Assembly (NCBI GenBank): GCA_051530055.1
Contig: CM121341.1
Location: 9,526,784 to 9,590,783, forward strand
Origin: Neoechinorhynchus agilis
Taxonomy: Eukaryota; Animalia; Acanthocephala
Reading direction: 5' to 3'
Length of the DNA stretch: 64,000 nucleotides
The notes under the pieces were generated by a model. The model saw only the letters and a list, made by a program, of their open reading frames with translations, was not told where the DNA came from and ran no database searches. The translations under genes and the position numbers were made by a program. This document shows positions 2,506-64,000 of this stretch, piece after piece. Numbering within the stretch: the first letter of the stretch is position 1; every line of letters starts with the position of its first letter.

Positions 2506-2516
2506 ACCGAAGAAAA

Positions 2517-5339: not shown

Positions 5340-5369
5340 CTGAAGAGGTCTGGATGCAGACGAAAATTC
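5340..5369 (+). ncRNA. Minimal hammerhead ribozyme motif at the Penelope 3' end
   Basis: CTGAAGA-G-GTCTG-GATG-CAGAC-GAAA-ATT-C, followed by AATAAA. The core, helix II and palindromic helix III are intact, but helix I pairing is poor. Confidence 0.6.
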
Positions 5370-5737
5370 CTACAAATAAATCAGTCATCGGGGAGGTTAA
5401 TAAGGTTGCAACTATGAATAAACAATTTTACAAGGAGAAATTTGTATTGATGAAAAATAACGTGACTGCATGATAAAAATACTATTGAAAATCAATGTTT
5501 TTACTTTTTAGATTGAAAATGATAAAAAATGTACAATTTTTAGTGAAGAATATTTAAAGTAAGGAGCGATGTCATAATGGTGGTATATTTAGATCGATTC
5601 AATGATTTTTCACGGGTATTATGCGAATCGTAAAATCCGACGTCTAAAACCTACAAAAAGGATTTTGGCTTAAAAAAATTGCAAATAAACGTCTGCAATC
5701 CGTTAAAAAAAGCCTGGATCATATTAGTCCTGGGAAC

Positions 5738-15568: not shown

Positions 15569-15764
15569 TTCGAGTTTGGCGATGTTGGTCATTTATTTTA
15601 AAATATTTCGTAAACTTGTTTTGCTTACCTCTTCAGTTATATTGTTTGCAAGTCGTCGTAAGCATTATGAAATATTTTAAAATAAATGATGAACACCATC
15701 AACAATCCGGGGGAAAAACATCGCCAAATTCGAATCAAATTCACCCCGACGACAATTCTCTATG
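15569..15764 (-). mobile_element. Fold-back element with central hammerhead motif, copy 1
   Basis: Reverse complement of 61122-61341, with an identical core of about 95 nt and the same inversion junction. One arm carries an internal deletion. Confidence 0.8.
15598..15639 (-). ncRNA. Minimal type I hammerhead ribozyme motif
   Basis: Minus strand TAA-CTGAAGA-G-GTAAGC-AAAACAA-GTTTAC-GAAA-TAT-T-TTA, identical to the motif at 61248-61288. Confidence 0.7.
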
Positions 15765-16127
15765 CAAGGATTGTCCAAAAGAATAGCACAACACAAACAG
15801 GCGTGCAGGAGGTTTGATGGTTCCTCAGCGATCCCCAATCATCCGAAAAACACCATGTGGACATCGGACATGGGCATCAATAATACAGCCTGAGGCTAAT
15901 TTACGAAGGAGATTGGCAATGGAGGCAATTTACATCACAGGGAATGTAACCATGGAGGATAACGAAGCAAATCATACGCTTGTACTTCCGAAAATTCAGG
16001 ACAAAACAAAACGTTAGATCACGCGAACCCGCGGATCTACGCCTACAGTCCAATTCTAACTTTAGCTTAATTTGTAGATATAATTGAAGAGGTATGCAAA
16101 ACAAAATATTTTAAATAAATGATCAAA
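15762..16127 (+). mobile_element. Penelope-like element 3' remnant (GIY-YIG C-terminal half + decayed hammerhead)
   Basis: LSKRIAQHKQACRRFDGSSAIPNH and GH..ASIIQPEANLRRRLAMEAIYITGNVTMEDN are homologous to the 4749-5210 remnant. The 3' end TTGAAGAGGTATGCAAAACAA-AATATTTTAAATAAATGATCAA equals the fold-back hammerhead with an 8-nt deletion. Confidence 0.75.
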
Positions 16128-17236
16128 CATTAATCTCTGTTCTTCTCACCACCAACCAAAATAAATCATCTTATCTAATCTACGATGACCGGAATCTTAT
16201 ATCGATTTAACATTAAACACCAATTTTCACTGATAGAGTTTGGTGAATGTGGAAATTGAGTGTTTCTCCGAGGGCGATTCCTTCTTATTCCTTATATCGA
16301 CTATTATTTAAGCATTCTTATGAGTGGCTTAGCCGGTAGTCTTTTTTGTTAGAAATGTCGATATGTGAGGTACCGGGAGAGAATGTGATTGGAATTATTG
16401 TTTACAAGTCAACATCCGCGGTAAATGATTATTTCAATTAAAAACATTTCTGCTAGCCTCGTCGGGTTCATCATCAGTTTGTTTATTAGATACACGACCG
16501 AATGGACACACAGTCCACCGCGATTTCAGTCTGGGAAATCGCTGGTCTGCGCTCAATTCCCGAAGACGTTAATAAATTCTCAGGACTTTTATTTAAACTT
16601 TTCACAATTTCACAACGAACATACAAAAACTGATAAGCGATTATCGGATCACTGAGACCCAGAAAAGATCTATTCTTCAGAAGTTGGAGTCGTCTTGATC
16701 ATAATCCTTCCCTTATAAAAAATATTGCGATATTTAAAAAAGGAGGAGCCTCATCAGTAATCTGAAAAGATTTTGTTTTGTGTGTTTCGAGGACGTAAAA
16801 TCACCATATTTTACCAACAAAAATTCTTAATTTCATAGAATTTGTCATACGTCGTCGATTGATCTTTGTTATCTCTCAGAAAAAGTAACTTCTTTTATGA
16901 GAACGTTCAATTTATTCGCCGATTAACGCATTTTGGTTTCAAAAAAGAACGGGATCTCGATAACGCTCTTTTTTATCCAGATAATGGCATTTTAATTAAT
17001 ATATGAAATCATTCACACCACCGTTCTCGATCACTCAGCTGCCGCCGTCCTGGTAGTCCACGTGGATTGCGAACGTCCACAGAAACAATAAAGAAAATAT
17101 CTCCAGGGATGATCAAGTTTGAATTGTAAAGAAGTTGTTCATGAATATATTAATTTCACGTTGGATAATTCCAACATTCTACCAAGAATTGTCTTTTTTT
17201 GCTGTAGATTGAAAATAATCCCGGTCATAAAATTAA

Positions 17237-18097: not shown

Positions 18098-18654
18098 AGC
18101 CGAAGGATTTTCTCTGTCGATGATGAAGTTGTGTAGCTATGGTGCAAAACGAACTTTTATTGCAAAAATTCATAACTTTTTCCTCAATAAATAGAAACCG
18201 ACGAAAGATTGCATAAATGGAAAAGTCGAATCGTAGTGATGCGAAATTTAATCCGGCCGATTAAAATCACAAAAATTAAAATCCAAAGAAGCGTAAATCA
18301 CGCGATTCACAAAATTATCATTTTTTCAATTATTACCGCTGTCGCGGATCCAAAAATTTCGCAATTGCTCCCTCTTTGCGACCCACTCCACGGAAATCTT
18401 TAGTAAAAGGCGAAAGATTTATGCGAGATTGAAGTGGGCCAGGAGCCGATGCTCGAAAAACGAGATTCTGGGTGTTTTACCCCTAACTTCTTTCAAAGTA
18501 CGCAACCGCTTAGTAGCCCTCGTCACAGGAATGAAAGACACTACGTAAATGCGTTTAGTCGTTGATGCAAGTTAAAGGTGGTGTACCTTTTAGTTTTAAC
18601 AGTTAATAATGACCAGAACAATCTTTCACTTTTTGTTAATTCGGAGTTTTTGAA

Positions 18655-19610
18655 GCGTTTGATTAAAATATGATAGAAAATCGATGAAGAAATTACGATG
18701 CTCAACAAACATTCCACAAAATCACGGCTCTTTCTCTTTACCGAAATGATCAACTTTCGTTTGATTAAAATATGATAGAAAATCGATGAAGAAATTACGA
18801 TGCTCAACAAACATTCCACAAAATCACGGCTCTTTCTCTTTACCGAAATGATCAACTTTCGTTTGATTAAAATATGATAGAAAATCGATGAAGAAATTAC
18901 GATGCTCAACAAACATTCCACAAAATCACGGCTCTTTCTCTTTACCGAAATGATCAACTTTCGTTTGATTAAAATATGATAGAAAATCGATGAAGAAATT
19001 ACGATGCTCAACAAACATTCCACAAAATCACGGCTCTTTCTCTTTACCGAAATGATCAACTTTCGTTTGATTAAAATATGATAGAAAATCGATGAAGAAA
19101 TTACGATGCTCAACAAACATTCCACAAAATCACGGCTCTTTCTCTTTACCGAAATGATCAACTTTCGTTTGATTAAAATATGATAGAAAATCGATGAAGA
19201 AATTACGATGCTCAACAAACATTCCACAAAATCACGGCTCTTTCTCTTTACCGAAATGATCAACTTTCGATTGATTGATTAAAATATGATAGAAAATCGA
19301 TGAAGAAATTACGATGCTCAACAAACATTCCACAAAATCACGGCTCTTTCTCTTTACCGAAATGATCAACTTTCGATTGATTGATTAAAATATGATAGAA
19401 AATCGATGAAGAAATTACGATGCTCAACAAACATTCCACAAAATCACGGCTCTTTCTCTTTACCGAAATGATCAACTTTCGATTGATTGATTAAAATATG
19501 ATAGAAAATCGATGAAGAAATTACGATGCTCAACAAACATTCCACAAAATCACGGCTCTTTTTCTTTACCGAAATGATCAACTTTCGATTGATTAAAATA
19601 TGATGGAAAA
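18655..19610. repeat. Tandem array A, 102-bp unit (three units 106 bp), about 9.5 copies
   Basis: The anchor GATTAAAATATGATAG recurs at 18661, 18763, 18865, 18967, 19069, 19171, 19277, 19383, 19489 and 19591. An eroded extra copy lies at 19762-19805. Confidence 0.97.
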
Positions 19611-19815
19611 TCGAAACGTTCCACGACGAAATATTACCAAATGATGGTCAATTTGATTTTCAGCGTAGATTACTTCAAAAATTAAAATCGATGCTTTAAT
19701 TGCGGTATCTTTTGGAAGAAACTCACGATCCGGTTAAAAAATTTATTCAAGAAGCAGCATAGAATCACGGCTCTTTTTGTTGACCGTAATGATCAACTTT
19801 AGATTCGAATTTTAT

Positions 19816-22959: not shown

Positions 22960-24910
22960 TTATTTTTAAATTTATACTTGGGACGGGGCTGTTGTAATGA
23001 TAAAGAAAAATCTTTATTTCCTAACTTTTGCCGTTCGAAGGCTTTTTGAGGAATTGTAATTTTTCATTGCCGCATTATTGATCAAGTTTTAGGTTTTTAA
23101 ATTTATACTTGGGAAGGGGCTGTTGTAATGATAAAGAAAAATCTTTGCAATCATATCATTAATAACTAATGACTAATGGAGATTTCATAATAATAAAGAA
23201 GTCTTTAGCCGGTATTATTCTCACCGCCATTTAAATTTTTTTCCGAACTTTTGCCGTTCGAAGGCTTCTTGAGGAATTGTAATTTTTCACTGCCGCATTA
23301 TTGATCAAGTTTTAGGTTTTTAAATTTATACTTGAACGAGGGCAGAATAAATAATGACTAATGAAGATTTCAGAATGATAAAGAAGTCTTTAACCGGTAT
23401 TATTCTCACCGCCATTTAAATTTTTTTCGAACTTTTGCCGTTCGAAGGCTTCTTGAGGAATTGTAATTTTTCACTGCCGCATTATTGATCAAGTTTTAGG
23501 TTTTTAAATTTATACTTGGGAAGGGGCTGTTGTAATGATAAAGAAAAATCTTTGCAATCATATCAGGAATAAATAATGACTAATGGAGATTTCATAATAA
23601 TAAAGAAGTCTTTAACCGGTATTATTCTCACCGCCATTTAAATTTTTTTTCGAACTTTTGCCGTTCGAAGGCTTCTTGAGGAATTGTAATTTTTCACTGC
23701 CGCATTATTGATCAAGTTTTAGGTTTTTAAATTTATACTTGGGAAGGGGCTGTTGTAATGATAAAGAAAAATCTTTGCAATCATATCAGGAATAAATAAT
23801 GACTAATGGAGATTTCATAATAATAAAGAAGTCTTTAGCCGGTATTATTCTCACCGCCATTTAAATTTTTTTTCGAACTTTTGCCGTTCGAAGGCTTCTT
23901 GAGGAATTGTAATTTTTCACTGCCGCATTATTGATCAAGTTTTAGGTTTTTAAATTTATACTTGGGAAGGGGCTGTTGTAATGATAAAGAAAAATCTTTG
24001 CAATCATATCAGGAATAAATAATGACTAATGGAGATTTCATAATAATAAAGAAGTCTTTAACCGGTATTATTCTCACCGCCATTTAAATTTTTTTCGAAC
24101 TTTTGCCGTTCGAAGGCTTCTTGAGGAATTGTAATTTTTCACTGCCGCATTATTGATCAAGTTTTAGGTTTTTAAATTTATACTTGAAAGAGGGCAGAAT
24201 AAATAATGACTAATGAAGATTTCAGAATGATAAAGAAGTCTTTAACCGGTATTATTCTCACCGCCATTTAAATTTTTTTCGAACTTTTGCCGTTCGAAGG
24301 CTTTTTGAGGAATTGTAATTTTTCACTGCCGCATTATTGATCAAGTTTTAGGTTTTTAAATTTATACTTGAAAGAGGGCAGAATAAATAATGACTAATGA
24401 AGATTTCAGAATGATAAAGAAGTCTTTAACCGGTATTATTCTCACCGCCATTTAAATTTTTTTCGAACTTTTGCCGTTCGAAGGCTTTTTGAGGAATTGT
24501 AATTTTTCACTGCCGCATTATTGATCAAGTTTTAGGTTTTTAAATTTATACTTGGGAAGGGGCTGTTGTAATGATAAAGAAAAATCTTTGCAATCATATC
24601 AGGAATAAATAATGACTAATGGAGATTTCATAATAATAAAGAAGTCTTTAACCGGTATTATTCTCACCGCCATTTAAATTTTTTTCCGAACTTTTGCCGT
24701 TCGAAGGCTTTTTGAGGAATTGTAATTTTTCACTGCCGCATTATTGATCAAGTTTTAGGTTTTTAAATTTATACTTGAAAGGGGCAGAATAAATAATGAC
24801 TAATGGGGATTTCAGAATGATAAAGAAGTCTTTAGCCGGTATTATTCTCACCGCCATTTAAATTTTTTTCCGAACTTTTGCCGTTCGAAGGCTTTTTGAG
24901 GAATTGTTTG
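22960..24910. repeat. Tandem array B, dimorphic 223/184-bp units, about 10 copies
   Basis: CCGTTCGAAG anchor spacings are 223, 184, 223, 223, 222, 184, 184, 223, 184. Confidence 0.97.
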
Positions 24911-25346: not shown

Positions 25347-26413
25347 CCGAGTCTATGAAAAATGTCTTTGATGTGCTTTAATGGCAAATCTGCAATCCAT
25401 ATTGTATTTCATTGCTTGACGTTGGTTCTCATGGACAAGTGACTATCTGTATCACTTTACTTTTAGACCTAATGATTATTGGCTTAATGTGGGCGCCTTA
25501 CTCTAACGTCAACAAAGTAGAAATAACGAAATGTTGATGTGTGAAAAGGAAGGTCAGGGGTATATGATTAAAGAATTATTGTTTAGAAGTCTTCAACCCG
25601 TAAATGTTTAAGTTGTTAAATGGTTACTCTGCCCTCACACCTGGGACATTTTAATCTATAATTTTGGTGAACACACTCCCGGTCATAACCTATTTGATTT
25701 TTATTTATAGGGGAAATATTTCAAAGGAGGTAACCTCGCCACATCAGTCATTGCTTGTAAGTTTTCTATTAAAATCAAATAGGTTGTGACCGGGCGTGTG
25801 CTCACCAAAATTATACTTTGTCTAACCCGAAGGATTTTCTCTGTTGATGATTTTAATCGATGTTGGCGGTTGAGATTTGCCAAATCACGAATATATCATC
25901 TACATATCTTTTGTAGAAAACCGGTTAAATCGCACCACACAAACAAAATCTCTAGGATAATTAAGAACAGCGGTATGCCGATAAAATGAAAATTTTATTC
26001 TCAACCTTTTATGCTGATAGGAAACCTCATTTGCTGGAGAACACAATAAATTTCGACGCTTAGTTAAAGAAGTTTTCTTAATCAAAGAACAGAAACCGGA
26101 GATGAATGACCAACGAGGCTACAAACTCTGTCTTTATGGCTTACAGAATGTAACAATTTAATCAACCATAAGCGCGTACTCGACGAGGCTCAAAACTTTT
26201 TTAATCAAAAAAGATTATTTACAATGTGAAGACTTCTAAACAATAAGTCTAATAAACAAACGAGTTTTGCGATCTTTTTGGTTGCAAGCTTAGATTACGG
26301 GCAATGCGCCACCTTCTCCTATTTCTTTTTGCTTGAATTTTAGCTACACAAAACTTATCGTACTCTTCAATTCCCACCAATGATTTTCGTGTTCTCTTCT
26401 AGACATTCCGAGA

Positions 26414-29330: not shown

Positions 29331-30280
29331 GAAGAAGGAGCAAAAAATCCGAGTGGTTCAAAATACATTTGTTTTAACCGATTAACTTGCTAAAAGACAA
29401 TCGAAAAAAGAAAACAAGCGGCTGAGAAATCAGTCGGCAATCCGATAAACTGATCACGATGCAGTCGGGAGAGAAAAACCCATTTTCGTCGACACGAAGA
29501 AGGAGCAAAAAATCCGAGTGGTTCAAAATACATTTGTTTTAACCGATTAACTTGCTAAAAGACAATCGAAAAAAGAAAACAAGCGGCTGAGAAATCAGTC
29601 GGCAATCCGATAAACTGATCACGATGCAGTCGGGAGAGAAAAACCCATTTTCGTCGACACGAAGAAGGAGCAAAAAATCCGAGTGGTTCAAAATACATTT
29701 GTTTTAACCGATTAACTTGCTAAAAGACAATCGAAAAAAGAAAACAAGCGGCTGAGAAATCAGTCGGCAATCCGATAAACTGATCACGATGCAGTCGGGA
29801 GAGAAAAACCCATTTTCGTCGACACGAAGAAGGAGCAAAAAATCCGAGTGGTTCAAAATACATTTGTTTTAACCGATTAACTTGCTAAAAGACAATCGAA
29901 AAAAGAAAACAAGCGGCTGAGAAATCAGTCGGCAATCCGATAAACTGATCACGATGCAGTCGGGAGAGAAAAACCCATTTTCGTCGACACGAAGAAGGAG
30001 CAAAAATTCTGAGTGGTTCAAAATACATTTGTTTTAGCCGATTAACTTGCTGAAGGACAATCGAAAAAAGAAAACAAGCGGTTGAGAAATCAGTCGGCAA
30101 TCCGATAAACTGATCACGATGCAGTCGGGAGAGAAAAACCCATTTTCGTCGACATGAAGAAGGAGCAAAAAATCCGAGTGGTTCAAAATACATTTGTTTT
30201 AACCGATTAACTTGCTGAAGGACAATCGAAAAAAGAAAACAAGTAGTTGAGAAATCAATCGACAATAAGCGAACTGATCA
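29331..30280. repeat. Tandem array C, 165-bp unit, about 5.8 copies
   Basis: GAAGAAGGAGC recurs at 29331, 29496, 29661, 29826, 29991 and 30156. Confidence 0.97.
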
Positions 30281-33800: not shown

Positions 33801-36800
33801 AGAAACCGAATTTCCGCTACTTTATGATGCTCATCGTAGATTAGAAAACGTCTAAGGTCTTTGAGCAGATCCGTAGTTCGATCTGCTTGAACTTCGTCAA
33901 CAATTTCAGCGACCATCGATTTAACGCTATGTACCATTAAAACATCGGCTACTTCCACGGACGTCTTTTACAATAAATTTTTTATTAGTAAATGAATACG
34001 AGAACTCTCACCTTCATTTTCTCAATAAGAAATAAGTTAAGGAATTTCAAGGACTTGAGACTTAGCAGTTTGCGGTAAATCTCTCCGATCTATGGAAACG
34101 CATAGAATTTTCAAAAAAAAGGTAACCAACGAACATTGGTCAATTTGTAACACTGAGCGTATAATTTTACACTTTCCTCTATTCTATTTTAACGAAATTC
34201 TGAGCTTAAAATACCTTTAAGGAAAGCAATACCTGCCATCTTTAAAGAGGTGATCGGCTTTCCGTTTTAAGCAATAATTCAATCTTTCTTCATTGTCCTA
34301 AAAGTGTACTTCAGATCTTAAAAAACCATTTACGAGAAGACAGACCTCACATGCATTTATAGCCTCATCGAATAAGTTTTGATCAAGAAGTTCCCTATAA
34401 ACGTATTTGCACTCATCAATGATTTTAAATCGATATACGCTAGTCTGCGAATGCGCCCACAGTACACCTTTGATTACGTCTTTTACTAAGCCTCGTGGAT
34501 GTGGCTACAATAACGTCTTGAGGCTATTAGACAAATGGAAAATAACCTCATCGATATAGTATCTTTGGATGCACTTTTGAGCGATCAGATCAATGATGAA
34601 CACTGTTCCCTCGGAGTTCAACACAACACAGTGGTATTGCGTTAAGGCGCATTTGACCAAACTTTCCGGCTTGCAATCCTCAGGATATCTAGTCAAATCT
34701 TTTTTAAATAATCCAATAAAGTCTTTTTAAACAAACTTCACTATCTTTCCATTCAACATCCGAATGTCATCGCCTTCTTCGTCCAAGCTAATTGATGCAG
34801 CATATAATCCGAATCCTTCGAATTAAAAAGCAACAAAAAATTTAACCGGGAAATTTCACCTGCCATCCAAACAAGACGTGTATCACCGTGTGATTGCAAT
34901 ACATTGATCCTTCCGTTTAAGAAACTCTCAGGAAATTCCTTGAAATTACTTATTACTGTAAATGAAGGGTTTTAGAAGATTAAAAATGACACAGCAAGTA
35001 CCTTCGGTTTTATATCGATCGAACAGCTTTGAGAGCTCGAAATCAGCGTCAATCATCGTAGAAGACAGTACAAATCTATACAGTCGTCTAAATACCAGAG
35101 AAACATAACGTATTATTAAAAATTTGATCAAGAAAAAGAGTTGGAGAGATGTATGGTGATCACGAAATGGCTCATGATGCTTCCTCGCGAAATACTTCGA
35201 TCTTGCAACTATTAAAGATTTATCTCAAAAGGGGCCAAAGAGATAATATTTTAAATCGAGCCAAAATACCCCTTTAAAACATTATTTAGCAATAAGAAAG
35301 GCCTTGCAAATTGGTGATTTTCGATCTAAAGGGCATTGGATAGAACCAAAATAATCTCGAAATGAACCTTTGTTTATCATAAAAACTGTTTACTGAAATA
35401 TCCCGAATTATGATCACCACAATCTTATTTCGAGAATAATTTTGTTTGCTCATTCAAAATATTATTCTCAATTGCGAATTGTTACACACTCGAGTTGAGG
35501 CCTTGAAGATTCGCAATGAAGATTTCAATAATAAAACTCGAATGTGTTACAATTCGCCATTGAGAATACACATCCATTCGAAGGAACAATCGAATAGAAC
35601 TAAAATATTCTCGAAATGAACTTTTGTTTATCATAAAATTTGTTTACTGAAATATCCCGAATAATGATCACCACAATCTTATTTCGAGAATAATTTTGTT
35701 TGCCCATTCAAAATATTATTCTCAATGGCGAATTGTTTCGAACTCGAGCTGAGGCCTTGAAAATTCGCAATGAAGAGTTTAATAATAAAACTCGAGCAGT
35801 GTAACAATTCGCCATTGAGAATACACATCCATTCGAAGGAACAATTGAATAGAATCAAAATATTCTCGAAATGAACTTCTGTTTATCATAAAATTTGTTT
35901 ACTGAAATATCCCGAATTATGATCACCACAATCTTATTTCGAGAATAATTTTGTTTACTCATTCAAAATATTATTCTCAATGGCGAATTGTTACACACTC
36001 GAGCTGAGGCCTTGAAAATTCGCAATGAAGAGTTATAATAAAACTCGAGCAGTGTAACAATTCGCCATTGAGAATACACATCCATTCGAAGGAACAATTG
36101 AATAGAATTAAAATATTCTCGAAATGAACTTCTGTTTATCATAAAATTTGTTTACTGAAATATCCCGAATTATGATCACCACAATCTTATTTCGAGAATA
36201 ATTTTGTTTGCTCATTCAAAATATTATTCTCAATGGCGAATTGTTACACACTCGAGCTGAGGCCTTGAAGATTCGCAATGAAGAGTTCAATAATAAAACT
36301 CGAGCAGTGTAACAATTCGCCATTGAGAATACACATCCATTCGAAGGAACAATTGAATAGAATTAAAATATTCTCGAAATGAACTTTTGTTTATCATAAA
36401 ATTTGTTTACTGAAATATCCCGAATTATGATCACCACAATCTTATTTCGAGAATAATTTTGTTTACTCATTCAAAATATTATTCTCAATGGCGAATTGTT
36501 ACACACTCGAGCTGAGGCCTTGAAAATTCGCAATGAAGAGTTCAATAATAAAACTCGAGCAGTGTAACAATTCGCCATTGAGAATACACATCCATTCGAA
36601 GGAACAATTGAATAGAATTAAAATATTATCGAAATGAACTTTTGTTTATCATAAAATTTGTTTACTGAAATATCCCGAATTATGATCACCACAATCTTAT
36701 TTCGAGAATAATTTTGTTTACTCATTCAAAATATTATTCTCAATGGCGAATTGTTACACACTCGAGCTGAGGCCTTGAAGATTCGCAATGAAGATTTCAA

Positions 36801-39034
36801 TAATAAAACTCGAGCAGTGTAACAATTCGCCATTGAGAATACACATCCATTCGAAGGAACAATTGAATAGAATTAAAATATTCTCGAAATGAACTTTTGT
36901 TTATCATAAAATTTGTTTACTGAAATATCCCGAATTATGATCACCACAATCTTATTTCGAGAATAATTTTGTTTGCTCATTCAAAATATTATTCTCAATG
37001 GCGAATTGTTACACACTCGAGCTGAGGCCTTGAAGATTCGCAATGAAGAGTTCAATAATAAAACTCGAAGTGTTACAATTCGCCATTGAGAATACACATC
37101 CATTCGAAGGAACAATTGAATAGAATTAAAATATTATCGAAATGAACTTTTGTTTATCATAAAATTTGTTTACTGAAATATCCCGAATTATGATCACCAC
37201 AATCTTATTTCGAGAATAATTTTGTTTACTCATTCAAAATATTATTCTCAATGGCGAATTGTTACACACTCGAGCTGAGGCCTTGAAAATTCGCAATGAA
37301 GATTTCAATAATAAAACTCGAGCAGTGTAACAATTCGCCATTGAGAATACACATCCATTCGAAGGAACAATTGAATAAAAATATTATCGAAATGAACTTT
37401 TGTTTATCATAAAATTTGTTTACTGAAATATCCCGAATTATGATCACCACAATCTTATTTCGAGAATAATTTTGTTTACTCATTCAAAATATTATTCTCA
37501 ATGGCGAATTGTTACACACTCGAGCTGAGGCCTTGAAGATTCGCAATGAAGATTTCAATAATAAAACTCGAGCAGTGTAACAATTCGCCATTGAGAATAC
37601 ACATCCATTCGAAGGAACAATTGAATAGAATTTAAATATTCTCGAAATGAACTTTTGTTTATCATAAAATTTGTATACTGAAATATCCCGAATTATGATC
37701 ACCACAATCTTATTTCGAGAATAATTTTGTTTACTCATTCAAAATATTATTCTCAATGGTGAATTGTTACACACTCGAGCTGAGGCCTTGAAGATTCGCA
37801 ATGAAGAGTTTAATAATAAAACTCGAGCAGTGTAACAATTCGCCATTGAGAATACACATCCATTCGAAGGAACAATTGAATAGAACAAGAATATTCGTTA
37901 AAAGCCACTGTTCACCAAAAAGCTCCCCCCTAACTGATAAAATTTTATTGCAATCGTTCATACCTCGAAGTGAGTGCAAGAATGCACACGGCACCGTTTA
38001 GATTGAACGTTTGAATGTCCAAAAATCCGCTACAGTCATCTGATGCGATGTCTTGCGCTCGATAAAGCTAGATTTCTTTAGTACTTCAAAAGTATCAATG
38101 AGAAACAAACTTCTTTTGCAACGAATTTAGGCCGTTTGGAACACAAACATTTGAACCCATAAATCGTGCCTAGTTTGAGTAAGGAAACGATTTATGGTAA
38201 ATAAAGAAACCGTATTGAGTTCCAATGACACATCCAACGTTTTCTTTGCAAGTAACAAATCCCACACAGGTTGGTAGAGCTATCTAATCAAAGGTTTGTT
38301 TTCAAATGTTCACGGCCGTGCAATTGAACCATTGGCATTTCCGTTATGTGAGGTCCGAAATGATTATGAGGTTGAGAGTAACAGACCCGCCGTCTTTGTT
38401 TAGACTGATCATCGTATACGATCAGTGCCACATGAACTCCATCGGTTGAGCAGTAGCATGACTTGGCGACCATTGCACTCGGTACGAGGTATTCTATAAT
38501 CGGATCCAAAATACAATCGAATTAGAAATCAAAGAACTTTATTTTTCTTTTCAAAATTTCACTACTGATTTATTTCACCTTAGATAATTCCGACATTCTA
38601 CTAAGATTGGTCATTGTAAATTAATCTAATCGACTAGATGTGTGAATTTAAATCAGAGGAGTGACAAAAAAACCACAACAAGAACTATCTTTTTCTCCGA
38701 AAACAATCGAATTAGAAATCATAGAACCTTCGATTTGATCGTTTTTCGATAGATTACGATAGTATAAACTACGGCCATTGAGCACCATGTACACGTGGTT
38801 GTTCGCAACAACCATATCGTCGATTTGGCGATCGGATCTAATGAAATGCGGCCGAGAAACAAAATCCTCCCACTTACCTAAACTTGACTTTTTGTATAGT
38901 GAATATCTTTTCATCTTCTTCAACCAAATCTTCCTAAAATTCGTTTAAGCGTGAATAAGAGAAAACATATTATGGCCACTTACCTCCCAAAACGGATTCG
39001 ACGAATGACATAATTTATCAATTTGATTGGACAT
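30841..39034 (-). CDS. VPS18: Vacuolar protein sorting 18 (Pep3/deep orange), multi-exon
   Basis: Exon 1 MSNQIDKL..FWE joins EDLVEEDEKIFTIQKVKF(R)SDRQIDDMVVANN via GT-AG introns. Further matches: LTQYHCVVL, VKDVIKGVLWAHSQTSVYRF..FDEAINAC, FDIRQVLPRL..AIDYLEFC-like..VHNLLLALY and a C-terminal RING-H2 (CSKC..LCRHLYHESC..CLICG). Confidence 0.88.
35340..37890. repeat. Tandem array D, about 255-bp unit, about 10 copies, inside a VPS18 intron
   Basis: AATACACATCC anchor spacings are 250-255. Each unit has two internal inverted repeats. Confidence 0.97.
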
Positions 39035-39104: not shown

Positions 39105-40420
39105 TAACCGTTTTGAAGATTTAACTGTTAATGCCCTATTTTTATGGCCTAAAAATTAAAGAAATTTATTAAGTCCGATTTTTTCCGGACGCCAATGTTG
39201 TGCCTCCGGAATATCGAATTTAATAAATTCCTTTAATTTTCCGTCGTAAAAAAAGGTCATTAAACCGTTTCGAAGATTTAACTCTTAATGTCCTATTTTT
39301 ATGGCCTAAAAAATTAAAGAAATTTATTAAGTCCGATTTTTTTCGGAAGTCAATGTTGTGCCTCCGATATATCGAATTCAATAAATTCCTTTAATTTTCA
39401 GTCGTAAAAAAAGGTCATTAAACCGTTTCGAAGATATAACTCTTAGTGTGCAATTTTTATGGCTCCGATTTTTTTCGGAAGCCAATATTGTGCCCCCGGA
39501 ATATCGAATTCAATAAATTCCTTTAATTTTCCGTCGTAAAAAAGGTCATTAAACCGTTTCGAAGATTTAACTCTTAGTGCCCTATTTTTATGGCCTAAAA
39601 AAATTAAAAAATTTTATTTAGTCCGATTTTTTCCGGAAGCCATCGAATTCAATAAATTCCTTTAATTTTCCGTCGTAAAAAAGTTCATTAAACCGTTTCG
39701 AAGATTTAACTCTTAATGCCCTATTTTTATGGCCTAAAAAATTAAAGAAATTTATTAAGTCCGATTTTTTTCGGAAGTCAATGTTGTGCCCCCGGAATAT
39801 CGAATTCAATAAATTCCTTTAATTTTCCGTCGTAAAAAAGTTCATTAAACCGTTTCGAAGATTTAACTCTTAATGCCCTATTTTTATGGCCTAAAAAATT
39901 AAAGAAATTTATTAAGTCCGATTTTTTTCGGAAGTCAATGTTGTGCCCCCGGAATATCGAATTCAATAAATTCCTTTAATTTTCCGTCGTAAAAAAGTTC
40001 ATTAAACCGTTTCGAAGATTTAACTCTTAATGCCCTATTTTTATGGCCTAAAAAATTAAAGAAATTTATTAAGTCCGATTTTTTTCGGAAGTCAATGTTG
40101 TGCCCCCGGAATATCGAATTCAATAAATTCCTTTAATTTTCCGTCGTAAAAAAGTTCATTAAACCGTTTCGAAGATTTAACTCTTAATGCCCTATTTTTA
40201 TGGCCTAAAAAATTAAAAAAATTTATTAAGTCCGATTTTTTCCGGAAGCCAATGTTGTGCCCCCGGAATACCGAATTCAATAAATTCCTTTAATTTTCAG
40301 CCGTAAAAAAAGGTCATTAAACCGTTTCGAAGATTTAACTCTTAGTGCCCTATTTTCCCCCCTTTTTTTCGGACGCCAATATTGTGCCCCCGGAATATCG
40401 AATTCAATAAATTCCTTTAA
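39105..40420. repeat. Tandem array E, 157-bp unit, about 8 copies with eroded edges
   Basis: Identical spurious ORFs at 39778, 39935 and 40092 give the period. Each unit has the inverted pair AATAAATTCCTTTAATTTT / AAAATTAAAGAAATTTATT. Confidence 0.95.
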
Positions 40421-49334: not shown

Positions 49335-51675
49335 ACAAACAGCAAAACAATACATCAGGCCACTAAAATTGATCGCCCTTTTAACCGACGAGATCCTTAA
49401 AAAACTCTAGAACCGATCAATCTTTAAAAAAAACTAGAAAATGACGAATTCAAAAGTGAACAAAGACCCTAAGGCGTCTGAGGAACACTCCACGCTTCAA
49501 TCTTGCCGTCCATCACAAACAATAAACAAAAAAGCCGCAGTTTCCATAGAAAATAAAAGCAGCAAAACAAAACATCAGGCCACTAAAATTGATCGCTCTT
49601 TTAACCGACGAGATCCTTAAAAACTCTAGAACCGATCAATCTTAAAAAAACTAGAAAATGACGAATTCAAAAGTGAACAAAGACCCTAAGGCGTCTGAGG
49701 AACACTCCACGCTTCAATCTTGCCGTCCATCACAAACAATAAACAAAAAAGCCGCAGTTTCCATAGAAAATAAAAGCAGCAAAACAAAACATCAGGCCAC
49801 TAAAATTGATCGCTCTTTTAACCGACGAGATCCTTAAAAAACTCTAGAACCGATCAATCTTTAAAAAAACTAGAAAATGACGAATTCAAAAGTGAACAAA
49901 GGCCCTAAGGCGTCTGAGGAACACTCCACGCTTCAATCTTGCCGTCCATCACAAACAATAAACAAAAAAGCCGCAGTTTCCATAGAAAATAAAAGCAGCA
50001 AAAAAACATCAGGCCACTAAAATTGATCGCTCTTTTAACCGACGAGATCCTTAAAAAACTCTAGAACCGATCAATCTTTAAAAAAACTAGAAAATGACGA
50101 ATTCAAAAGTGAACAAAGACCCTAAGGCGTCTGAGGAACACTCCACGCTTCAATCTTGCCGTCCATCACAAACAATAAACAAAAAAGCCGCAGTTTCCAT
50201 AGAAAATAAAAGCAGCAAAACAAAACATCAGGCCACTAAAATTGATCGCTCTTTTAACCGACGAGATCCTTAAAAAACTCTAGAACCGATCAATCTTAAA
50301 AAAACTAGAAAATGACGAATTCAAAAGTGAACAAAGACCCTAAGGCGTCTGAGGAACACTCCACGCTTCAATCTTGCCGTCCATCACAAACAATAAACAA
50401 AAAAGCCGCAGTTTCCATAGAAAATAAAAGCAGCAAAACAAAACATCAGGCCACTAAAATTGATCGCTCTTTTAACCGACGAGATCCTTAAAAAACTCTA
50501 GAACCGATCAATCTTAAAAAAACTAGAAAATGACGAATTCAAAAGTGAACAAAGACCCTAAGGCGTCTGAGGAACACTCCACGCTTCAATCTTGCCGTCC
50601 ATCACAAACAATAAACAAAAAAGCCGCAGTTTCCATAGAAAATAAAAGCAGCAAAACAAAACATCAGGCCACTAAAATTGATCGCTCTTTTAACCGACGA
50701 GATCCTTAAAAAACTCTAGAACCGATCAATCTTAAAAAAACTAGAAAATGACGAATTCAAAAGTGAACAAAGACCCTAAGGCGTCTGAGGAACACTCCAC
50801 GCTTCAATCTTGCCGTCCATCACAAACAATAAACAAAAAAGCCGCAGTTTCCATAGAAAATAAAAGCAGCAAAACAAAACATCAGGCCACTAAAATTGAT
50901 CGCTCTTTTAACCGACGAGATCCTTAAAAAACTCTAGAACCGATCAATCTTTAAAAAAACTAGAAAATGACGAATTCAAAAGTGAACAAAGACCCTAAGG
51001 CGTCTGAGGAACACTCCACGCTTCAATCTTGCCGTCCATCACAAACAATAAACAAAAAAGCCGCAGTTTCCATAGAAAATAAAAGCAGCAAAACAAAACA
51101 TCAGGCCACTAAAATTGATCGCTCTTTTAACCGACGAGATCCTTAAAAAACTCTAGAACCGATCAATCTTTAAAAAACTAGAAAATGACGAATTCAAAAG
51201 TGAACAAAGACCCTAAGGCGTCTGAGGAACACTCCACGCTTCAATCTTGCCGTCCATCACAAACAATAAACAAAAAAGCCGCAGTTTCCATAGAAAATAA
51301 AAGCAGCAAAACAAAACATCAGGCCACTAAAATTGATCGCTCTTTTAACCGACGAGATCCTTAAAAAATCTAGAACCGATCAATCTTTAAAAAAACTAGA
51401 AAATGACGAATTCAAAAGTGAACAAAGACCCTAAGGCGTCTGAGGAACACTCCACGCTTCAATCTTGCCGTCCATCACAAACAATAAACAAAAAAGCCGC
51501 AGTTTCCATAGAAAATAAAAGCAGCAAAACAAAACATCAGGCCACTAAAATTGATCGCTCTTTTAACCGACGAGATCCTTAAAAAACTCTAGAACCGATC
51601 AATCTTTAAAAAAACTAGAAAATGACGAATTCAAAAGTGAACAAAGGCCCTAAGGCGTCTGAGGAACACTCCACG
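49335..51675. repeat. Tandem array F, about 218-bp unit, about 10.7 copies
   Basis: ATCAGGCCACT anchor spacings are 217-220. Units differ mainly in A-tract length. Confidence 0.97.
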
Positions 51676-52229
51676 CCAAACGCAAAACAAGCCGAGTTCC
51701 GGACAAAGTGTTCAGAATGCTTGCATCAAGACGAGTGGGGTGCACAGTTTAAGGTTCTTCCGGTTGAGAAGCGCACGAATTGTGTAACGGGCAGATTTTG
51801 CGCGTCCAAAGATCTCTTCCGTTACTATGGAAACGACGGGACTTGAAGCGTTTTTTTTGCCATTTACGGCGGATGAATTTTAATAATTTTGTTTAGTGCA
51901 ATATTTCGGCTTTGCAAGTTTTCTACTATTTAAACTAACTGTAAAGAATCGAAATACAGAAAATAATTTACTTTTAATATCTCGTCCTCTACATAAGACC
52001 AGAATTTTTTGAACAATTGCGAAAAACCAAGTCAACGGGAAAATTAGGAATTTCTCTTTATGAAAATAAACACTTCTTTCCCTTAGTAACAAATAAATTC
52101 TGAGGAATTCCCACTTAAATGACGCAATGTTAAAATTTTCTCTCATTCGCCTTGAAAAAAAACCGTGAGGGAAGCTTAAGGTAGAATTCGTTGGTTAGAA
52201 AGTAATTTTAAAAGAAACTTTAATTACAT

Positions 52230-58907: not shown

Positions 58908-60863
58908 TCAATCATTCATGTTCTTACTAAAGAATCCATTATAATCTAACCGAGTAAGATACTGCCCTAAAGCCGTGGAAGCATCTGTACGACCGATTCC
59001 AAAATCCCGACCGTCTTGTTTCAATTTCAACATTACATTAAACATCAACTGTGAGCTCTTTTGAAACTTCGACTTTATCGCGTCAATCGATCTTTGGTAC
59101 ATGAGCTCATTTTTCGCCATTCCAGGCAATGCCTCGCAAAATTCATGGATGATATGAAGGCAGTCTTTTAAAGACGATATTATATGCTGATCGTCCGTTA
59201 CGAAACATTGGCTGTTAATGTTTCGAATGAGCGTAGAAAAGGCATCAGTGAGTTGATCCAGCTTTGATGATTGGTCGTTAGATTGGTGATCATTTAAAAA
59301 ACGATGGAACTCATGTTCAATCACATCGACGTGAATGTAATATATGAGATTCCGAACGAAATGACTCATTATTGATCGAACATAAAAGAGATTACGGCAG
59401 GAGGTTCTCGTCTGGCGTTGATGGCACTTTAAGACGTACCAACAGTCGCCTAGTTTCCGTTCTATCCCGTACAAACGTCTAATTAACAAATTAATTGAAT
59501 CGAATTCCTCACAGATGTATAAGCCGTAAGACGCTACGGAGTTAGCTCGAAACAGCATCGAGACGGGCCATTTGAACTGGATACGAATCTGAGTTTCAAC
59601 CGGTAGAGAGTTTTCTTTAAAGACGATTGACTCAATCTTCTTTTTTGTCTTAGAAAAATAGAATAATTTCTAAGGATGATCGTGACATTTTGTCTTTAAC
59701 AGAAAACTGGTTACTTTTCTGACGATATTTTGAATACTATTTCAACGCCTAAAAAAGCTGAAAAAGCTCCGAACTAGTACATTGCAAGGTTCACGATAAG
59801 ATTCCATTGTTTCAAAAATATTAGTTTTCAATCAAAAAGCTATAAACGTATTAATCGTAGGACATTAAAAATGGATATCACAATCACTTAGCCATATCAC
59901 CGAATGAGTCGAATCATCATAAGAAGTTCGCAAACGAGGTCATATCTCCTTAAGAGTCCATAATCCCTTAATACGCTCAAACTATTAAAAACCTGATTAT
60001 CCTTCACCAGAAGTTCATAAAGCTCGTTAGACTGATGATCGTATACTTGGACGATTGTCTGGGTCAGTTCCCAGTCAGTTATAGCCCTACTTTCATCTGC
60101 TAAAAGTCGATCGAACATTTGCTGGGTTTCCTTGTGCCCTTTATTTTCATGTCGTCTTAACTTTCCAATAAAAAGGACAAGACGTGCCGTTGGCGTAGTG
60201 AGTATTGTTGGAAGGCAACTCATTCGCAGGCAGCTTTCGTGCTGATCAATAAAGAACTCTAGTTTTGGATCTATGGAATTGAATGTTGAACACATCCAAC
60301 ACTTGATTTGCCTCACCAGAACTTTAAGGCACGCATTACTTAGTTTCTGAAGGTATTTGTCCTTTACCGAAATGAATTTAGTTTTGTTACCCCATTGTAA
60401 TATTCATTTCGTTCTGTAACTCATTATCGACCGACTTATCATAGTATCTATAGACAATATCGATCAAATCACCGGGACAATCGATTTTCCGTTCACATTC
60501 CTCAATCAAACTTTTAATCGTTGACAGCCAATATGCCCATTTGCGAGAAAGGATATAAAAATCGATCGGAGTGACGTTGGCATCGCTGATTGGTAGATCT
60601 AATCCTTTAACGAATTCAATGTAATCTAATAGGAAACTTTTAGAGAGACAATATGCGATCGCTTCTTGAAGCAGACTGCTATCGAGATCGAATGGCTTGT
60701 TGGCAAACGTCCTTAAATAAGCGTAATCACGGCCAAGTTCTGCGAGTTTATTGCATATTTCCATTTCGGCTTTCGTAAGAGAATCTCGAGTTTCAAAAAC
60801 CGGGGAAACTTTGCCAAGAAGTAGACAGTTGTAAAGAATGGGCGAATTCAAGAAATGAGGCAT
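58908..60863 (-). CDS. TUBGCP4: Gamma-tubulin complex component 4, multi-exon
   Basis: N-terminus AEMEICNKLAELGRDY (compare SETSVLNRLCRLGTDY), QIKCWM..EFFI, FKWPVSMLF, NLIYYIHVDVIE and terminal YLTRLDYN. The WP, VDV.E and RLDYN motifs favour GCP4 over GCP2/3. Confidence 0.8.
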
Positions 60864-60994
60864 CAATGAGCGTCTGAAATGGGAAGTCCAATACAAACTG
60901 TAATCGCGCCTATCTTTCACAATATGGTAAAATCCTAGTTAAAACAAAATTATTTTCATTTAAATGTGTAAAATATAATAATTGATATAAATTT

Positions 60995-61105
60995 AATCAT
61001 TTTCGGCCTTTGCTTAGGCCTTCTTTAGTCTATTGTTTTCGGAGGTTGTATTTTATTCCGAAAACAACCGACTGAAGAATGAATACGCGAAGGCAGAAAA
61101 TTATC
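60995..61105. repeat. Imperfect palindrome of about 110 bp made of two decayed hammerhead-like motifs
   Basis: Minus strand CTAAAGA-A-GGCC-TAAGCAAA-GGCC-GAAA (61028-61001) and plus strand CTGAAGA-A-..AAGGCA-GAAA-ATT (61072-61102), around the hairpin TGTTTTCGGA/TCCGAAAACA. Confidence 0.5.
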
Positions 61106-61121
61106 AATTAAATTATTTATA

Positions 61122-61341
61122 TCATAGAGAATTGTCGTCGGGGTGAATTTGATTCGAATTTGGCGATGAATTTCCCCCGGATTGTTGATGGTGTTGATCA
61201 TTTATTTTAAAATATTTCATAATGCTTACGACGACTTGCAAACAATATAACTGAAGAGGTAAGCAAAACAAGTTTACGAAATATTTTAAAATAAATGATC
61301 AACAACAATTTCGGGGGGGGGGAAACATCGCCAAACTCGAA
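61122..61341 (+). mobile_element. Fold-back element with central hammerhead motif, copy 2
   Basis: Inverted arms 61153-61218 and 61278-61341, with the inner 26 bp perfect, a 59-nt spacer and a 30-nt one-sided tail shared with copy 1. Confidence 0.8.
61248..61288 (+). ncRNA. Minimal type I hammerhead ribozyme motif
   Basis: TAA-CTGAAGA-G-GTAAGC-AAAACAA-GTTTAC-GAAA-TAT-T-TTA. It has a 6-bp helix II (one G-U), palindromic AUAU helix III and 3-bp helix I, then AATAAA. Confidence 0.7.
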
Positions 61342-61929
61342 ATAAATTTTTCTAATACTCACTGCGTTACAACCATTTTGACTTTAAAAAGAAGGTACTC
61401 ATATCGCATGATTAAGCTTTATAGTCTCTAAATCCATTATCGAGGAAGGCATTGAAGCAACTGGGAAAACACAACGGAATTCGGTTTGACCTTTTTTGTT
61501 ACTTATCGTGATTGTTTTTTGAACGAATTATTTTTTAAGCTAAAAAATAAGCGTGAATGGTTGCGTATTCGATAGCGATAAGAAAATAGCGATTTGGGAT
61601 CATATTCCAAGTTTAACAGAGATCTTCAGGTATTAAAAGCCACCACAAAAATCAATTTGAGGTTAAAAATAAGGATTTAACGAATCCACGAATGATGACT
61701 CTACAAGAAACTATACAAATGTTAAAATCGATTAAACTTTGCGGAAATTCTGTATTGACACCAAATCTACCATTGCTGAAAGAAAAAAGGTTCGCTAATA
61801 GTCTTCAATAAAAAGATCAGTGAGTCTATCAGCGCTTACAGAAGTGTAGGTCAAAGAATTATAAGAAAGCTGATTGCGTTTTTTGTAGCCTTTTCTCCCT
61901 TACACGACTGATTATCTTCCTCAGGCACG

Positions 61930-64000
61930 CAACCAACCGATCTTTTACATCGTAGAAGCGCATAAAATCACTTTGACTCTCAAAAACTTACGGTTATGAG
62001 TTTTGTACGAATCTGTTCGGATCCTGCCGAGAAAGAGAGTTTCCCCTTCGCTTCAACGAGGTATTTCGTCCCCTTTTTCTTTGTGAGCCATCTTCGATCG
62101 TGGATTTTGAACCTTTTGACTCACTTAAACAGGGATTAAGGCCAAAAGTCCACTTGACCACTCCTTGGTGGTAAGCGTTGATTTTCTTTAATGGTTTACG
62201 GACGAGCCGGTGTTTTTTATGGAAAATTTCTTACTTGGCTTATTTCGAACATTTTGGACACCCAACCAACCGATCTTTTACATCGTAGAAGCGCATAAAA
62301 TCACTTTGACTCTCAAAAACTTACGGTTATGAGTTTTGTAGGAATCTGTTCGGATCCTCCCGAGAAGGATAGTTCCCCTTCCCTTCAACGAGGTATTTCG
62401 TCCCCTTTTTCTTTGTGAGCCATCTTCGATCGTGGATTTTGAACCTTTTGACTCACTTAAACAGGGATTAAGGCCAAAAGTCCACTTGACCACTCCTTGG
62501 TGGTAAGCGTTGATTTTCTTTAATGGTTTACGGACGAGCCGGTGTTTTTTATGGAAAATTTCTTACTTGGCTTATTTCGAACATTTTGGACACCCAACCA
62601 ACCGATCTTTTACATCGTAGAAGCGCATAAAATCACTTTGACTCTCAAAAACTTACCCTCCCGAGAAAGAGAGTTTCCCCTTCCCTTCAACGAGGTATTT
62701 CGTCCCCTTTTTCTTTGTGAGCCATCTTCGATCGTGGATTTTGAACCTTTTGACTCACTTAAACAGGGATTAAGGCCAAAAGTCCACTTGACCACTCCTT
62801 GGTGGTAAGCGTTGATTTTCTTTAATGGTTTACGGACGAGCCGGTGTTTTATGGAAAATTTCTTACTTGGCTTATTTCGAACATTTTGGACACCCAATCA
62901 ACCGATCTTTTACATCGTAGAAGCGCATAAAATCACTTTGACTCTCAAAAACTTACGGTTATGAGTTTTGTAGGAATCTGTTCGGATCCTCCCGAGAAAG
63001 AGAGTTTCCTCTTCGCTTCAACGAGGTATTTCGTCCCCTTTTTCTTTGTGAGCCATCTTCGATCGTGGATTTTGAACCTTTTGACTCACTTAAACAGGGA
63101 TTAAGGCCAAAAGTCCACTTGACCACTCCTTGGTGGTAAGCGTTGATTTTCTTTAATGGTTTACGGACGAGCCGGTGTTTTTTATGGAAAATTTCTTACT
63201 TGGCTTATTTCGAACATTTTGGACACCCAACCAACCGATCTTTTACATCGTAGAAGCGCATAAAATCACTTTGACTCTCAAAAACTTTCCTCCCGAGAAA
63301 GAGAGTTTCCCCTTCGCTTCAACGAGGTATTTCGTCCCCTTTTTCTTTGTGAGCCATCTTCGATCGTGGATTTTGAACCTTTTGACTCACTTAAACAGGG
63401 ATTAAGGCCAAAAGTCCACTTGACCACTCCTTGGTGGTAAGCGTTGATTTTCTTTAATGGTTTACGGACGAGCCGGTGTTTTTTATGGAAAATTTCTTAC
63501 TTGGCTTATTTCGAACATTTTGGACACCCAATCAACCGATCTTTTACATCGTAGAAGCGCATAAAATCACTTTGACTCTCAAAAACTTACGGTTATGAGT
63601 TTTGTAGGAATCTGTTCGGATCCTGCCGAGAAAGAGAGTTTCCCCTTCCCTTCAACGAGGTATTTCGTCCCCTTTTTCTTTGTGAGCCATCTTCGATCGT
63701 GGATTTTGAACCTTTTGACTCACTTAAACAGGGATTAAGGCCAAAAGTCCACTTGACCACTCCTTGGTGGTAAGCGTTGATTTTCTTTAATGGTTTACGG
63801 ACGAGCCGGTGTTTTTTATGGAAAATTTCTTACTTGGCTTATTTCGAACATTTTGGACACCCAATCAACCGATCTTTTACATCGTAGAAGCGCATAAAAT
63901 CACTTTGACTCTCAAAAACTTACGGTTATGAGTTTTGTACGAATCTGTTCGGATCCTCCCGAGAAAGAGAGTTTTCTCTTCGCTTCAACGAGGTATTTCG
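61930..64000. repeat. Tandem array G, dimorphic 333/300-bp units, runs off the window end
   Basis: CAACCGATC anchor spacings are 333, 332, 300, 333, 301, 333. The short unit lacks about 32 bp. Confidence 0.97.

Follow-up and report, generated by a model that had tools for sequence, protein, structure and literature searches.

A fold-back element of about 200 bp occurs in two copies, in opposite orientation, within a 64,000-nucleotide stretch of the genome of the acanthocephalan Neoechinorhynchus agilis (GenBank assembly GCA_051530055.1, contig CM121341.1, positions 9,526,784 to 9,590,783 of the forward strand). This whole stretch is referred to as the window, and positions are counted from its first letter. 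The window carries FAN1-like, LRR, PP2C and gamma-tubulin-complex genes, and 3′ ends of Penelope-like elements (PLEs) lie in it as well. A database search with the PP2C protein gave matches of at most 43% identity, which points to a metazoan whose close relatives are missing from that database. The two fold-back copies are called A and B. At a probability of about three in four, each copy is a very short PLE insertion unit, in which two 5′-truncated 3′ ends of the element are joined head-to-head. The fold-back represents no new class: the layout has already been published for PLE insertions, and is found here in miniature and apparently re-mobilised once.

Anatomy of the two fold-back copies

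61123-61341, + strand: fold-back copy B, whole unit (inverted half, junction, direct half), with both ends set by alignment with copy A
61123-61152, - strand: one-sided 30-nt tail of copy B, common to both copies; it prolongs the inverted half at its 3′ end and is missing from the direct half
61153-61222, - strand: inverted half (left arm) of copy B, a 5′-truncated PLE 3′ end
61223-61341, + strand: direct half of copy B, a segment of PLE 3′ untranslated region (UTR) with hammerhead motif, AAUAAA and 3′ end, and no tail
61248-61288, + strand: PLE-type minimal hammerhead motif of copy B, a descriptor match
61290-61295, + strand: AAUAAA, 5 nt past the predicted cleavage site
15569-15764, - strand: fold-back copy A, whole unit, with junction and tail as in copy B; the direct half is shortened by a deletion of 23 bp
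15735-15764, + strand: 30-nt tail of copy A
15599-15639, - strand: hammerhead motif of copy A, with the same sequence as in copy B (CUGA start at 15636, H17 at 15602)

The arms of copy B pair in two blocks. The inner arms (61189-61222 / 61274-61307) are 94% complementary and the outer arms (61146-61178 / 61316-61348) 79%, and 51 nt of unique spacer lie between them; copy A has the same layout of arms and spacer. A perfect complement of 27 nt extends from G61278, the first base of the GAAA box, and begins 4 nt earlier, at TTAC/TTAT, when one mismatch is allowed. The arms also contain a perfect 12-nt palindrome, UAUUUUAAAAUA, and near-terminal 16-nt repeats, TTCGAATTTGGCGATG / CATCGCCAAACTCGAA. 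When folded as RNA, copy B forms a single long hairpin at -78 kcal/mol (z = -9.3 versus 200 dinucleotide shuffles). The unit has no open reading frame (ORF) and is thus non-coding, and it holds one hammerhead, with no tandem array at either locus.

The inverted and the direct half of copy B are 95% identical when indels are left out. Read on the minus strand, the inverted half starts at UUAUGAAAUA, so that it is devoid of the CUGANGA box and helix II. Taken together with its tail (61123-61222), it starts within the hammerhead at UUAUGAAA and runs 30 nt farther out than the direct half, which in turn keeps about 28 nt of 3′ UTR in front of the hammerhead motif. At the junction, TGCTTAC (61223-29) matches GTAAGCA (61259-65) over 7 nt, and this match could extend the inverted half into helix II. 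However, the spacer also aligns in sense with the UTR of a hammerhead motif at 5340, and the exact junction is therefore ambiguous within 61222-61258.

Copy A and copy B share 97.8% identity over 182 bp (BLAST, E = 3e-87). Beyond this match lie a 23-bp indel, whose extra bases are found only in the right arm of copy B, and then an 18-bp block. Only 4 substitutions occur in about 195 aligned positions, and the longest run identical between the copies is about 90 nt (61210-61299). The alignment ends sharply at both edges, and the flanks are unrelated. The comparison covers two copies (n = 2), both within the 64-kb window. A third, decayed homologue of the core is located at 16078-16126, and therefore the core sequence is not restricted to copies A and B.

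These alignments bear on an earlier, sequence-only reading of the window, which had described two copies in opposite orientation with a common junction and a one-sided 30-nt tail. That description is confirmed, as are the limits given for copy A, while copy B begins at C61123 and not at 61122, and the identical core exists at about 90 nt instead of about 95. The perfect complement that it had seen from the GAAA box onward was likewise found, and the 5′ half of a hammerhead (CUGAAGA and helix II) stands in the spacer in front of GAAA, where it had been placed.

Penelope-like origin and the hammerhead motif

4701-5400, + strand: reference PLE 3′ end in the window, with a GIY-YIG endonuclease (EN) remnant at 4701-4949, 3′ UTR, minimal hammerhead at 5335-5374 and AAUAAA
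5335-5374, + strand: minimal hammerhead of the reference PLE 3′ end, a descriptor match followed by AAUAAA
2517-2555, + strand: third independent minimal hammerhead motif, with a helix I of 5 bp (the best of the motifs) and helix II GACGC/GCGUC
15508-15560, + strand: decayed hammerhead-like PLE 3′ end directly 5′ of copy A (score 33 against the 5340 region, shuffle maximum 30, 0/500)
15765-16130, + strand: older 5′-truncated PLE fragment adjoining the tail of copy A, with a frameshifted GIY-YIG remnant at about 15775-16020, 3′ UTR and a dead hammerhead
60978-61120, no strand assigned: older second fold-back beside the tail of copy B, with an inverted repeat 60993-61043 / 61057-61107, 78% complementary

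The link to PLEs comes from the region in front of the 5340 motif. About 390 nt upstream of this motif, frame +2 reads IIYKVQCRQCRKYYVGQTSKGLKKRIDQHKYCVRRADMSSAISNH..., and the remnant at 4701-4949 scores 22.7 bits against Pfam GIY-YIG (cut-off 22.6). An exhaustive HMMER search returned 2239 homologues of this remnant. Ten long homologues (636-869 aa) were tested, and all ten have RVT_1 together with a C-terminal match to the remnant; Pfam GIY-YIG was matched in seven and exceeded the cut-off in six. Judged by these domains, RVT_1 followed by a C-terminal GIY-YIG in the homologues is the architecture of EN-bearing (EN+) PLEs. The second remnant, at 15775-16020, matches the first with E = 1e-8 (BLASTP). 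Word-indexed protein searches with both EN remnants gave no match, and exact-protein look-ups of the transposable-element ORFs of the window matched no record.

The direct half of copy B aligns with the 3′ UTR at 5280-5420 (local score 42, shuffle maximum 36, 0/500) and, more strongly, with the UTR at 16030-16180 (local score 79, shuffle maximum 45). Within the latter, 16078-16126 is 81% identical to the fold-back core over 58 nt. The hammerhead there is dead: UUGAAGA at 16084 carries a C3 to U change, and the 3′ strand of helix II has been deleted with G12. Because the direct half aligns significantly with both the 5340 and the 16078 UTRs, the spacer and right arm can be read as a 5′-truncated PLE 3′ UTR in sense. 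On the other strand, the left arm is the same PLE 3′ end from UUAUGAAAUA on, running 30 nt farther. The derivation of the fold-back from a PLE 3′ end is thus supported by homology, and the connection with Penelope that the sequence-only reading had drawn holds, since the direct half is homologous to the 3′ UTR behind a GIY-YIG remnant.

A similar arrangement adjoins copy B. The older fold-back at 60978-61120 matches itself at 71% over 146 nt, and its arms carry decayed hammerhead-like motifs, CUGAAGA...GAAAAUUA at 61072 on the plus strand and CUAAAGA-A-GGCC...GGCC-GAAA on the minus strand. By local alignment it resembles the 2522 and 5340 motifs, and its junction differs from that of copy B. 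The presence of this two-hammerhead fold-back next to copy B indicates that head-to-head PLE ends recur in the genome. For 60993-61107 and 15480-15550, a type-III hammerhead was considered and dropped, as the GAAA/15.1 positions and helix I do not fit; both are decayed type-I motifs. As to position, copy B lies about 200 bp upstream of the gamma-tubulin-complex-protein gene, and together the two fold-backs are about 60-420 bp upstream of its first ORF block (60387-60920, minus strand), in the likely promoter region.

The hammerhead motif was sought with a descriptor coded from the published traits of the PLE minimal hammerhead ribozyme (PMC4209133). In this ribozyme the boxes are CUGANGA and GAAA, one conserved nucleotide stays unpaired between A9 and 10.1, and G10.1 pairs with C11.1. 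Helix II is enlarged to 6-8 bp, helix III is missing or has 1-2 bp and a small palindromic loop, and helix I measures 2-5 bp (PMC4209133). The descriptor matches four times in 64 kb, at 61251 (copy B), at 15636 on the minus strand (copy A), at 2522 and at 5340. By chance a mean of 0.005 matches is expected (200 dinucleotide-preserving shuffles), and none with a helix II of at least 5 bp. The four matches represent three unrelated sequences:

Copies B and A: uaa-CUGAAGA-g-GUAAGC-aaaacaa-GUUUAC-GAAA-ua-U-U^uua
5340: CUGAAGA-g-GUCUG-gaug-CAGAC-GAAA-au-U-C^
2522: gcuuc-CUGACGA-a-GACGC-aag-GCGUC-GAAA-au-U-U^gaagu

In copy B, the CUGAAGA box (61251-61257) is followed by a bulged G (61258) and by helix II, GUAAGC/GUUUAC (61259-64 / 61272-77), which has 6 bp including one G.U and a loop at 61265-71. 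GAAA occupies 61278-81, loop 3 is UA (61282-83), U16.1 is 61284 and H17 is U61285. All catalytic boxes are present, namely CUGANGA, GAAA, the A15.1-U16.1 pair and H17, and the same is true of copy A. Cleavage is predicted after U61285 or, in an alternative register without the loop, after A61283. Several features that the descriptor does not demand recur in all three sequences: exactly one bulged nucleotide after A9, a 2-nt palindromic loop 3 (UA in the fold-back, AU in the 2522 and 5340 motifs) and an AAUAAA 5-15 nt downstream. More generally, AAUAAA or AAUUAAA stands 3-15 nt past every hammerhead-like motif in the window. In a structure-anchored alignment, helix II is 100% paired in the three families, with 4 of 6 pairs changed on both sides. 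Helix I, which was likewise not demanded, is 73% paired, versus 28-37% when the partners are slid (n = 3 families). The spacer and right arm are thus supported as a PLE-type minimal hammerhead motif by the catalytic boxes, the bulged nucleotide, helix II and the minimal helix III, and the motif appears to be a passenger inherited from the PLE 3′ UTR.

Several results weigh against this interpretation of the motif and of the unit. Helix I of copy B (61248-50 / 61286-88) is made of 3 A-U pairs only. The covariation in helix II is partly circular, since the descriptor had demanded pairing. Taken by itself, the hammerhead segment reaches -4.6 kcal/mol (z = -0.17) and folds no better than its shuffles. 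None of the Rfam hammerhead families (Hammerhead_1, _3, _II, HH9, HH10) is matched at the gathering score in the whole window or at E <= 10 at both loci. Over 2400-5500, however, the better-formed 2522 and 5340 motifs are missed at E <= 10 as well, so that the negative reflects model coverage and is uninformative. The sequence-only reading had made its hammerhead depend on acceptance by such models; Rfam does not give it, while the PLE descriptor does. No PLE reverse-transcriptase (RT) ORF or domain was found in the window, and hence no autonomous partner. The search for a target-site duplication (TSD) gave nothing past 2-bp direct repeats at the exact boundaries, AT in copy B and TG in copy A, which differ from each other and are within chance. 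A fixed TSD length had been proposed as the means of telling a DNA transposon from retrotransposition, and neither class is indicated by it. Finally, copying as a unit is seen in two copies only. A 26-mer DNA scan of metagenomes found no more copies, and a 19-mer scan of the same kind gave 20 loci, all of them chance seeds or an unrelated coding repeat, with a hammerhead in none.

Copying of the unit and competing explanations

The differences between the arms tell in which order the fold-back arose and was duplicated. Had A and B been made by separate integrations, the arms of each copy should have begun as identical sequences, and the two junctions should be unlike. Between the two copies, the left arms are 97% identical and the right arms 97.8%. 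The left arm differs from the right arm at the same positions in both copies, TTAT versus TTAC and AAATTCGAA versus AAACTCGAA; several further indels between the arms are visible only in copy B, the right arm of copy A being deleted there. Because the arm-specific differences, the junction and the tail are common to A and B, a fold-back with already diverged arms predates the duplication. The copying of the finished fold-back as a unit, which the sequence-only reading had put forward, is thus supported with n = 2, and the unrelated flanks make a segmental duplication unlikely. The copies do not lie inside a larger duplicated segment, as their homology stops at the edges of the element.

The layout of each copy agrees with what is known of PLE integration. 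In PLE insertions, an inverted, 5′-truncated copy stands head-to-head with a direct copy, with an optional tail of 30-40 bp at one end only (PMC8557442, PMC3846280, PMC11167929). The purified PLE protein cuts and extends both DNA strands, reverse transcription begins at two adjacent internal sites, and the interval between these two sites corresponds to the tail (PMC11167929). For the fold-back, the GIY-YIG endonuclease would have cut both DNA strands, and the two cDNAs would have met head-to-head to leave outward-facing 3′ ends. One cDNA, begun at the distal site, would include the tail, and the other, begun at the proximal site, would be without it. Two outward-facing 3′ ends and a tail on one side would be explained in this way, because PLEs start reverse transcription at a distal and a proximal site. 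The sequence-only reading had known of no named element built in this way; PLE insertions, as published, are built so.

The finished fold-back may later have served as a non-autonomous template that PLE RT/EN mobilised in trans. This is the likeliest route, since both strands of the unit terminate in a PLE 3′ end, and transcripts of either strand would be usable by PLE RT for the same reason. Retrotransposition of a fold-back transcript in trans is the most economical mechanism for the two copies and, on balance, the probable one. The siting of the copies may reflect the enzyme too. The PLE endonuclease has been reported to need or prefer PLE tail sequence (PMC11167929), and such a preference may have chosen the insertion sites. 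An older plus-strand remnant with a hammerhead and AAUUAAU (15508-15560; 61072-61110) precedes each copy, which follows about 20 nt 3′ of it; the copies are in opposite orientations, and their position near older PLE ends would fit this preference.

Other routes to the same structure have to be weighed. The small size of about 200 bp, the long inverted arms with their near-terminal 16-nt repeats and the 2-bp repeats at the boundaries resemble a miniature inverted-repeat transposable element (MITE) or a Foldback-type DNA transposon, whose arms would be terminal inverted repeats (TIRs) recognised by a transposase for cut-and-paste movement. This is hardly probable, since the inverted repeat stops 30 nt short of one end and the remaining tail is common to both copies, each arm, read outward, is sense-homologous to a retroelement 3′ UTR with AAUAAA, the 2-bp repeats differ in sequence and are within chance, and neither a transposase ORF nor a TIR-matching autonomous element was seen in the window. 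The MITE half of the hybrid element that the sequence-only reading had imagined falls with it, the inverted repeat being non-terminal on the tail side and no fixed TSD being seen; its retrozyme label is not retained either, in view of one hammerhead per unit and the lack of a tandem array. It is also conceivable that A and B are independent PLE insertions that acquired the same junction by deterministic self-priming at a fixed palindrome, and that the fold-back itself never moved. PLE inverted junctions often have palindromes, which have been interpreted as self-priming (PMC3846280), and the arms do contain the palindrome UAUUUUAAAAUA. However, the arms made in one event would start identical, whereas here the same two substitution sites differ in both copies, together with the indels seen in B only; moreover, the junction is 51 nt of unique spacer away from the palindrome, and the neighbouring older fold-back has a different junction. 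Independent insertion is improbable on these grounds. A segmental or ectopic duplication of DNA, such as gene conversion between two PLE nests, could have used the older PLE 3′-end fragments around both copies as homology patches. We regard it as very improbable: homology ends exactly at the element edges, the flanking PLE fragments are too diverged to recombine (scores barely over shuffles, and nothing by BLAST), and the copies are oppositely oriented relative to the older plus-strand motif 5′ of each.

The fold-back could, alternatively, be a functional RNA device, either a switch between an active hammerhead and a self-silenced hairpin or a precursor of small RNAs. The left arm matches GAAA, the cleavage site and AAUAAA as a perfect complement, and the hairpin has high stability; in a rotifer, small RNAs are known to come from PLE inverted repeats (PMC3846280). 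Nevertheless, the same geometry is a by-product of PLE integration. A gap of about 70 kcal/mol separates the hairpin from the hammerhead, too wide for an equilibrium switch to be realistic. The identical core is no evidence of selection or constraint, because a clean 90-nt run at 2% divergence has, by our own arithmetic, a probability of roughly 0.16. The best Rfam microRNA match, the plant MIR8007, reaches 38.6 bits against a gathering score of 195, which is generic hairpin noise. Published PLE minimal hammerheads cleave poorly and as dimers only (Cervera & de la Pena 2014, PMC4209133), and hammerhead cleavage is not required for PLE insertion in vitro (PMC11167929). A device of this kind has little likelihood. 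In the folding model, a ribozyme/hairpin switch is a thermodynamic possibility only, and the hairpin wins. In a transcript of the whole unit, GAAA and the cleavage site would be locked in the 27-bp perfect duplex and the hammerhead would be inactive there.

Under the PLE insertion reading, the fold-back could further be a true non-autonomous family, a hairpin-shaped PLE parasite that spreads as a unit, with the inverted arm masking the hammerhead so that read-through transcripts stay uncut. This extension is doubtful. If it is true, the fold-back would be a PLE-dependent "hairpin SINE" (short interspersed nuclear element), set apart from tandem retrozymes, and if it is multi-copy, an inverted, non-tandem type would be added to the known non-autonomous PLE derivatives; unless it is multi-copy, it belongs to ordinary repeat annotation. 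In any case, the genome GCA_051530055.1 appears to carry canonical EN+ PLEs with minimal hammerheads. These hammerheads are invisible to Rfam and are thus easily missed in annotation. The fold-back shows the PLE signature in compact form, as two head-to-head ends of which only one has a tail, and could help in testing the two-ended priming model.

The window holds other repeats and one RNA gene. A full-length U5 spliceosomal snRNA gene is located at 18335-18448 on the minus strand (Rfam 77.3 bits, gathering score 40), and a tandem array of 9.3 units of 102 bp lies about 200 bp from it, at 18656-19614. A LINE-like non-LTR retrotransposon (8244-11950, plus strand) has a zinc-knuckle ORF, an AP-endonuclease-like ORF and RVT_1 (E = 3e-20), and is broken by frameshifts. 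A 934-bp direct repeat (1082-2015 / 11958-12891, 98% identical, 10.9 kb apart) brackets the LINE and PLE fragments; it carries pieces of a minus-strand RT-like ORF and may be an LTR-like pair or two copies of one transposable element. Another fold-back, unrelated and single-copy in the window, is found at 25657-25815; its arms of 48 nt are 92% complementary and enclose a loop of 63 nt, and it could be a MITE. Intergenic minisatellite arrays are unusually dense (23161-24907, 29331-30266, 35335-37896, 39106-40356, 49340-51676 and 61926-64000; units of 157-332 bp, 84-99% identity). No hammerhead descriptor match falls in the minisatellite arrays of the window, so that by this test they are not retrozyme arrays.

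Comparison with known systems

The closest known structures are the PLE insertions (Evgen'ev & Arkhipova 2005; Arkhipova et al. 2013, PMC3846280; Craig et al. 2021, PMC8557442; PMC11167929). The fold-back shares with them the head-to-head inverted and direct 3′ copies, a 30-bp extension on one outer end only, a hammerhead motif in the repeated 3′ region, nesting beside other PLE fragments and a TSD that is weak or absent. Unlike them, the unit has neither an ORF nor a full pseudo-long terminal repeat (pLTR), its halves are cut to about 70-120 nt and the unit to about 200 bp, and the finished fold-back has apparently been re-copied as a unit.

The motif itself resembles PLE minimal hammerheads in its boxes, its U-H cleavage dinucleotide, the one unpaired nucleotide between A9 and G10.1, the G10.1-C11.1 pair, the 6-bp helix II, a helix III of 1 bp closed by a palindromic loop of 2 nt, the shortness of helix I and the location in a PLE 3′ end or pLTR. 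It differs from them in that helix I has just 3 A-U pairs, one G.U occurs in helix II, the cleavage is a predicted one, and the inverted arm can pair with the 3′ half of the motif. Dual minimal hammerheads on opposite strands have been reported in PLEs (PMC4209133), and the older fold-back at 60978-61120, with a decayed motif on each strand, is similar to these.

Hammerhead retroposons and non-LTR retrozymes are, like the fold-back, non-coding, a few hundred bp long and equipped with a type-I hammerhead, and for such elements a dependence on PLE enzymes and an origin from pLTR sequence have been proposed (Cervera & de la Pena 2020, PMC7229834; Li et al. 2026 preprint, 10.64898/2026.07.22.740005). 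However, retrozymes form direct tandem arrays with one hammerhead per monomer and give circular RNAs, whereas the unit described here is a single inverted pair with one hammerhead. The Sm-alpha SINE-like family of Schistosoma is a short, hammerhead-bearing, non-autonomous retroposon.

With the class II MITEs and Foldback elements, the fold-back has in common a small, non-coding sequence, long inverted arms and a transcript that strongly forms a hairpin. It is distinguished from them by arms that are retroelement 3′ ends, by an inverted repeat that is non-terminal on one side, and by the lack of a defined TSD or, in the window, of a transposase partner. The 5′ inversions of L1 reportedly arise by twin priming, a model that Ostertag and Kazazian are said to have put forward in 2001, in which both ends of the target DNA prime cDNA and the inverted segment is joined by microhomology. 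Priming of cDNA from both DNA ends would be common to L1 and to the fold-back. In L1, however, each segment derives from its own part of the RNA, without overlap, while one and the same 3′ region, in the manner typical of PLEs, is copied in both halves of the fold-back.

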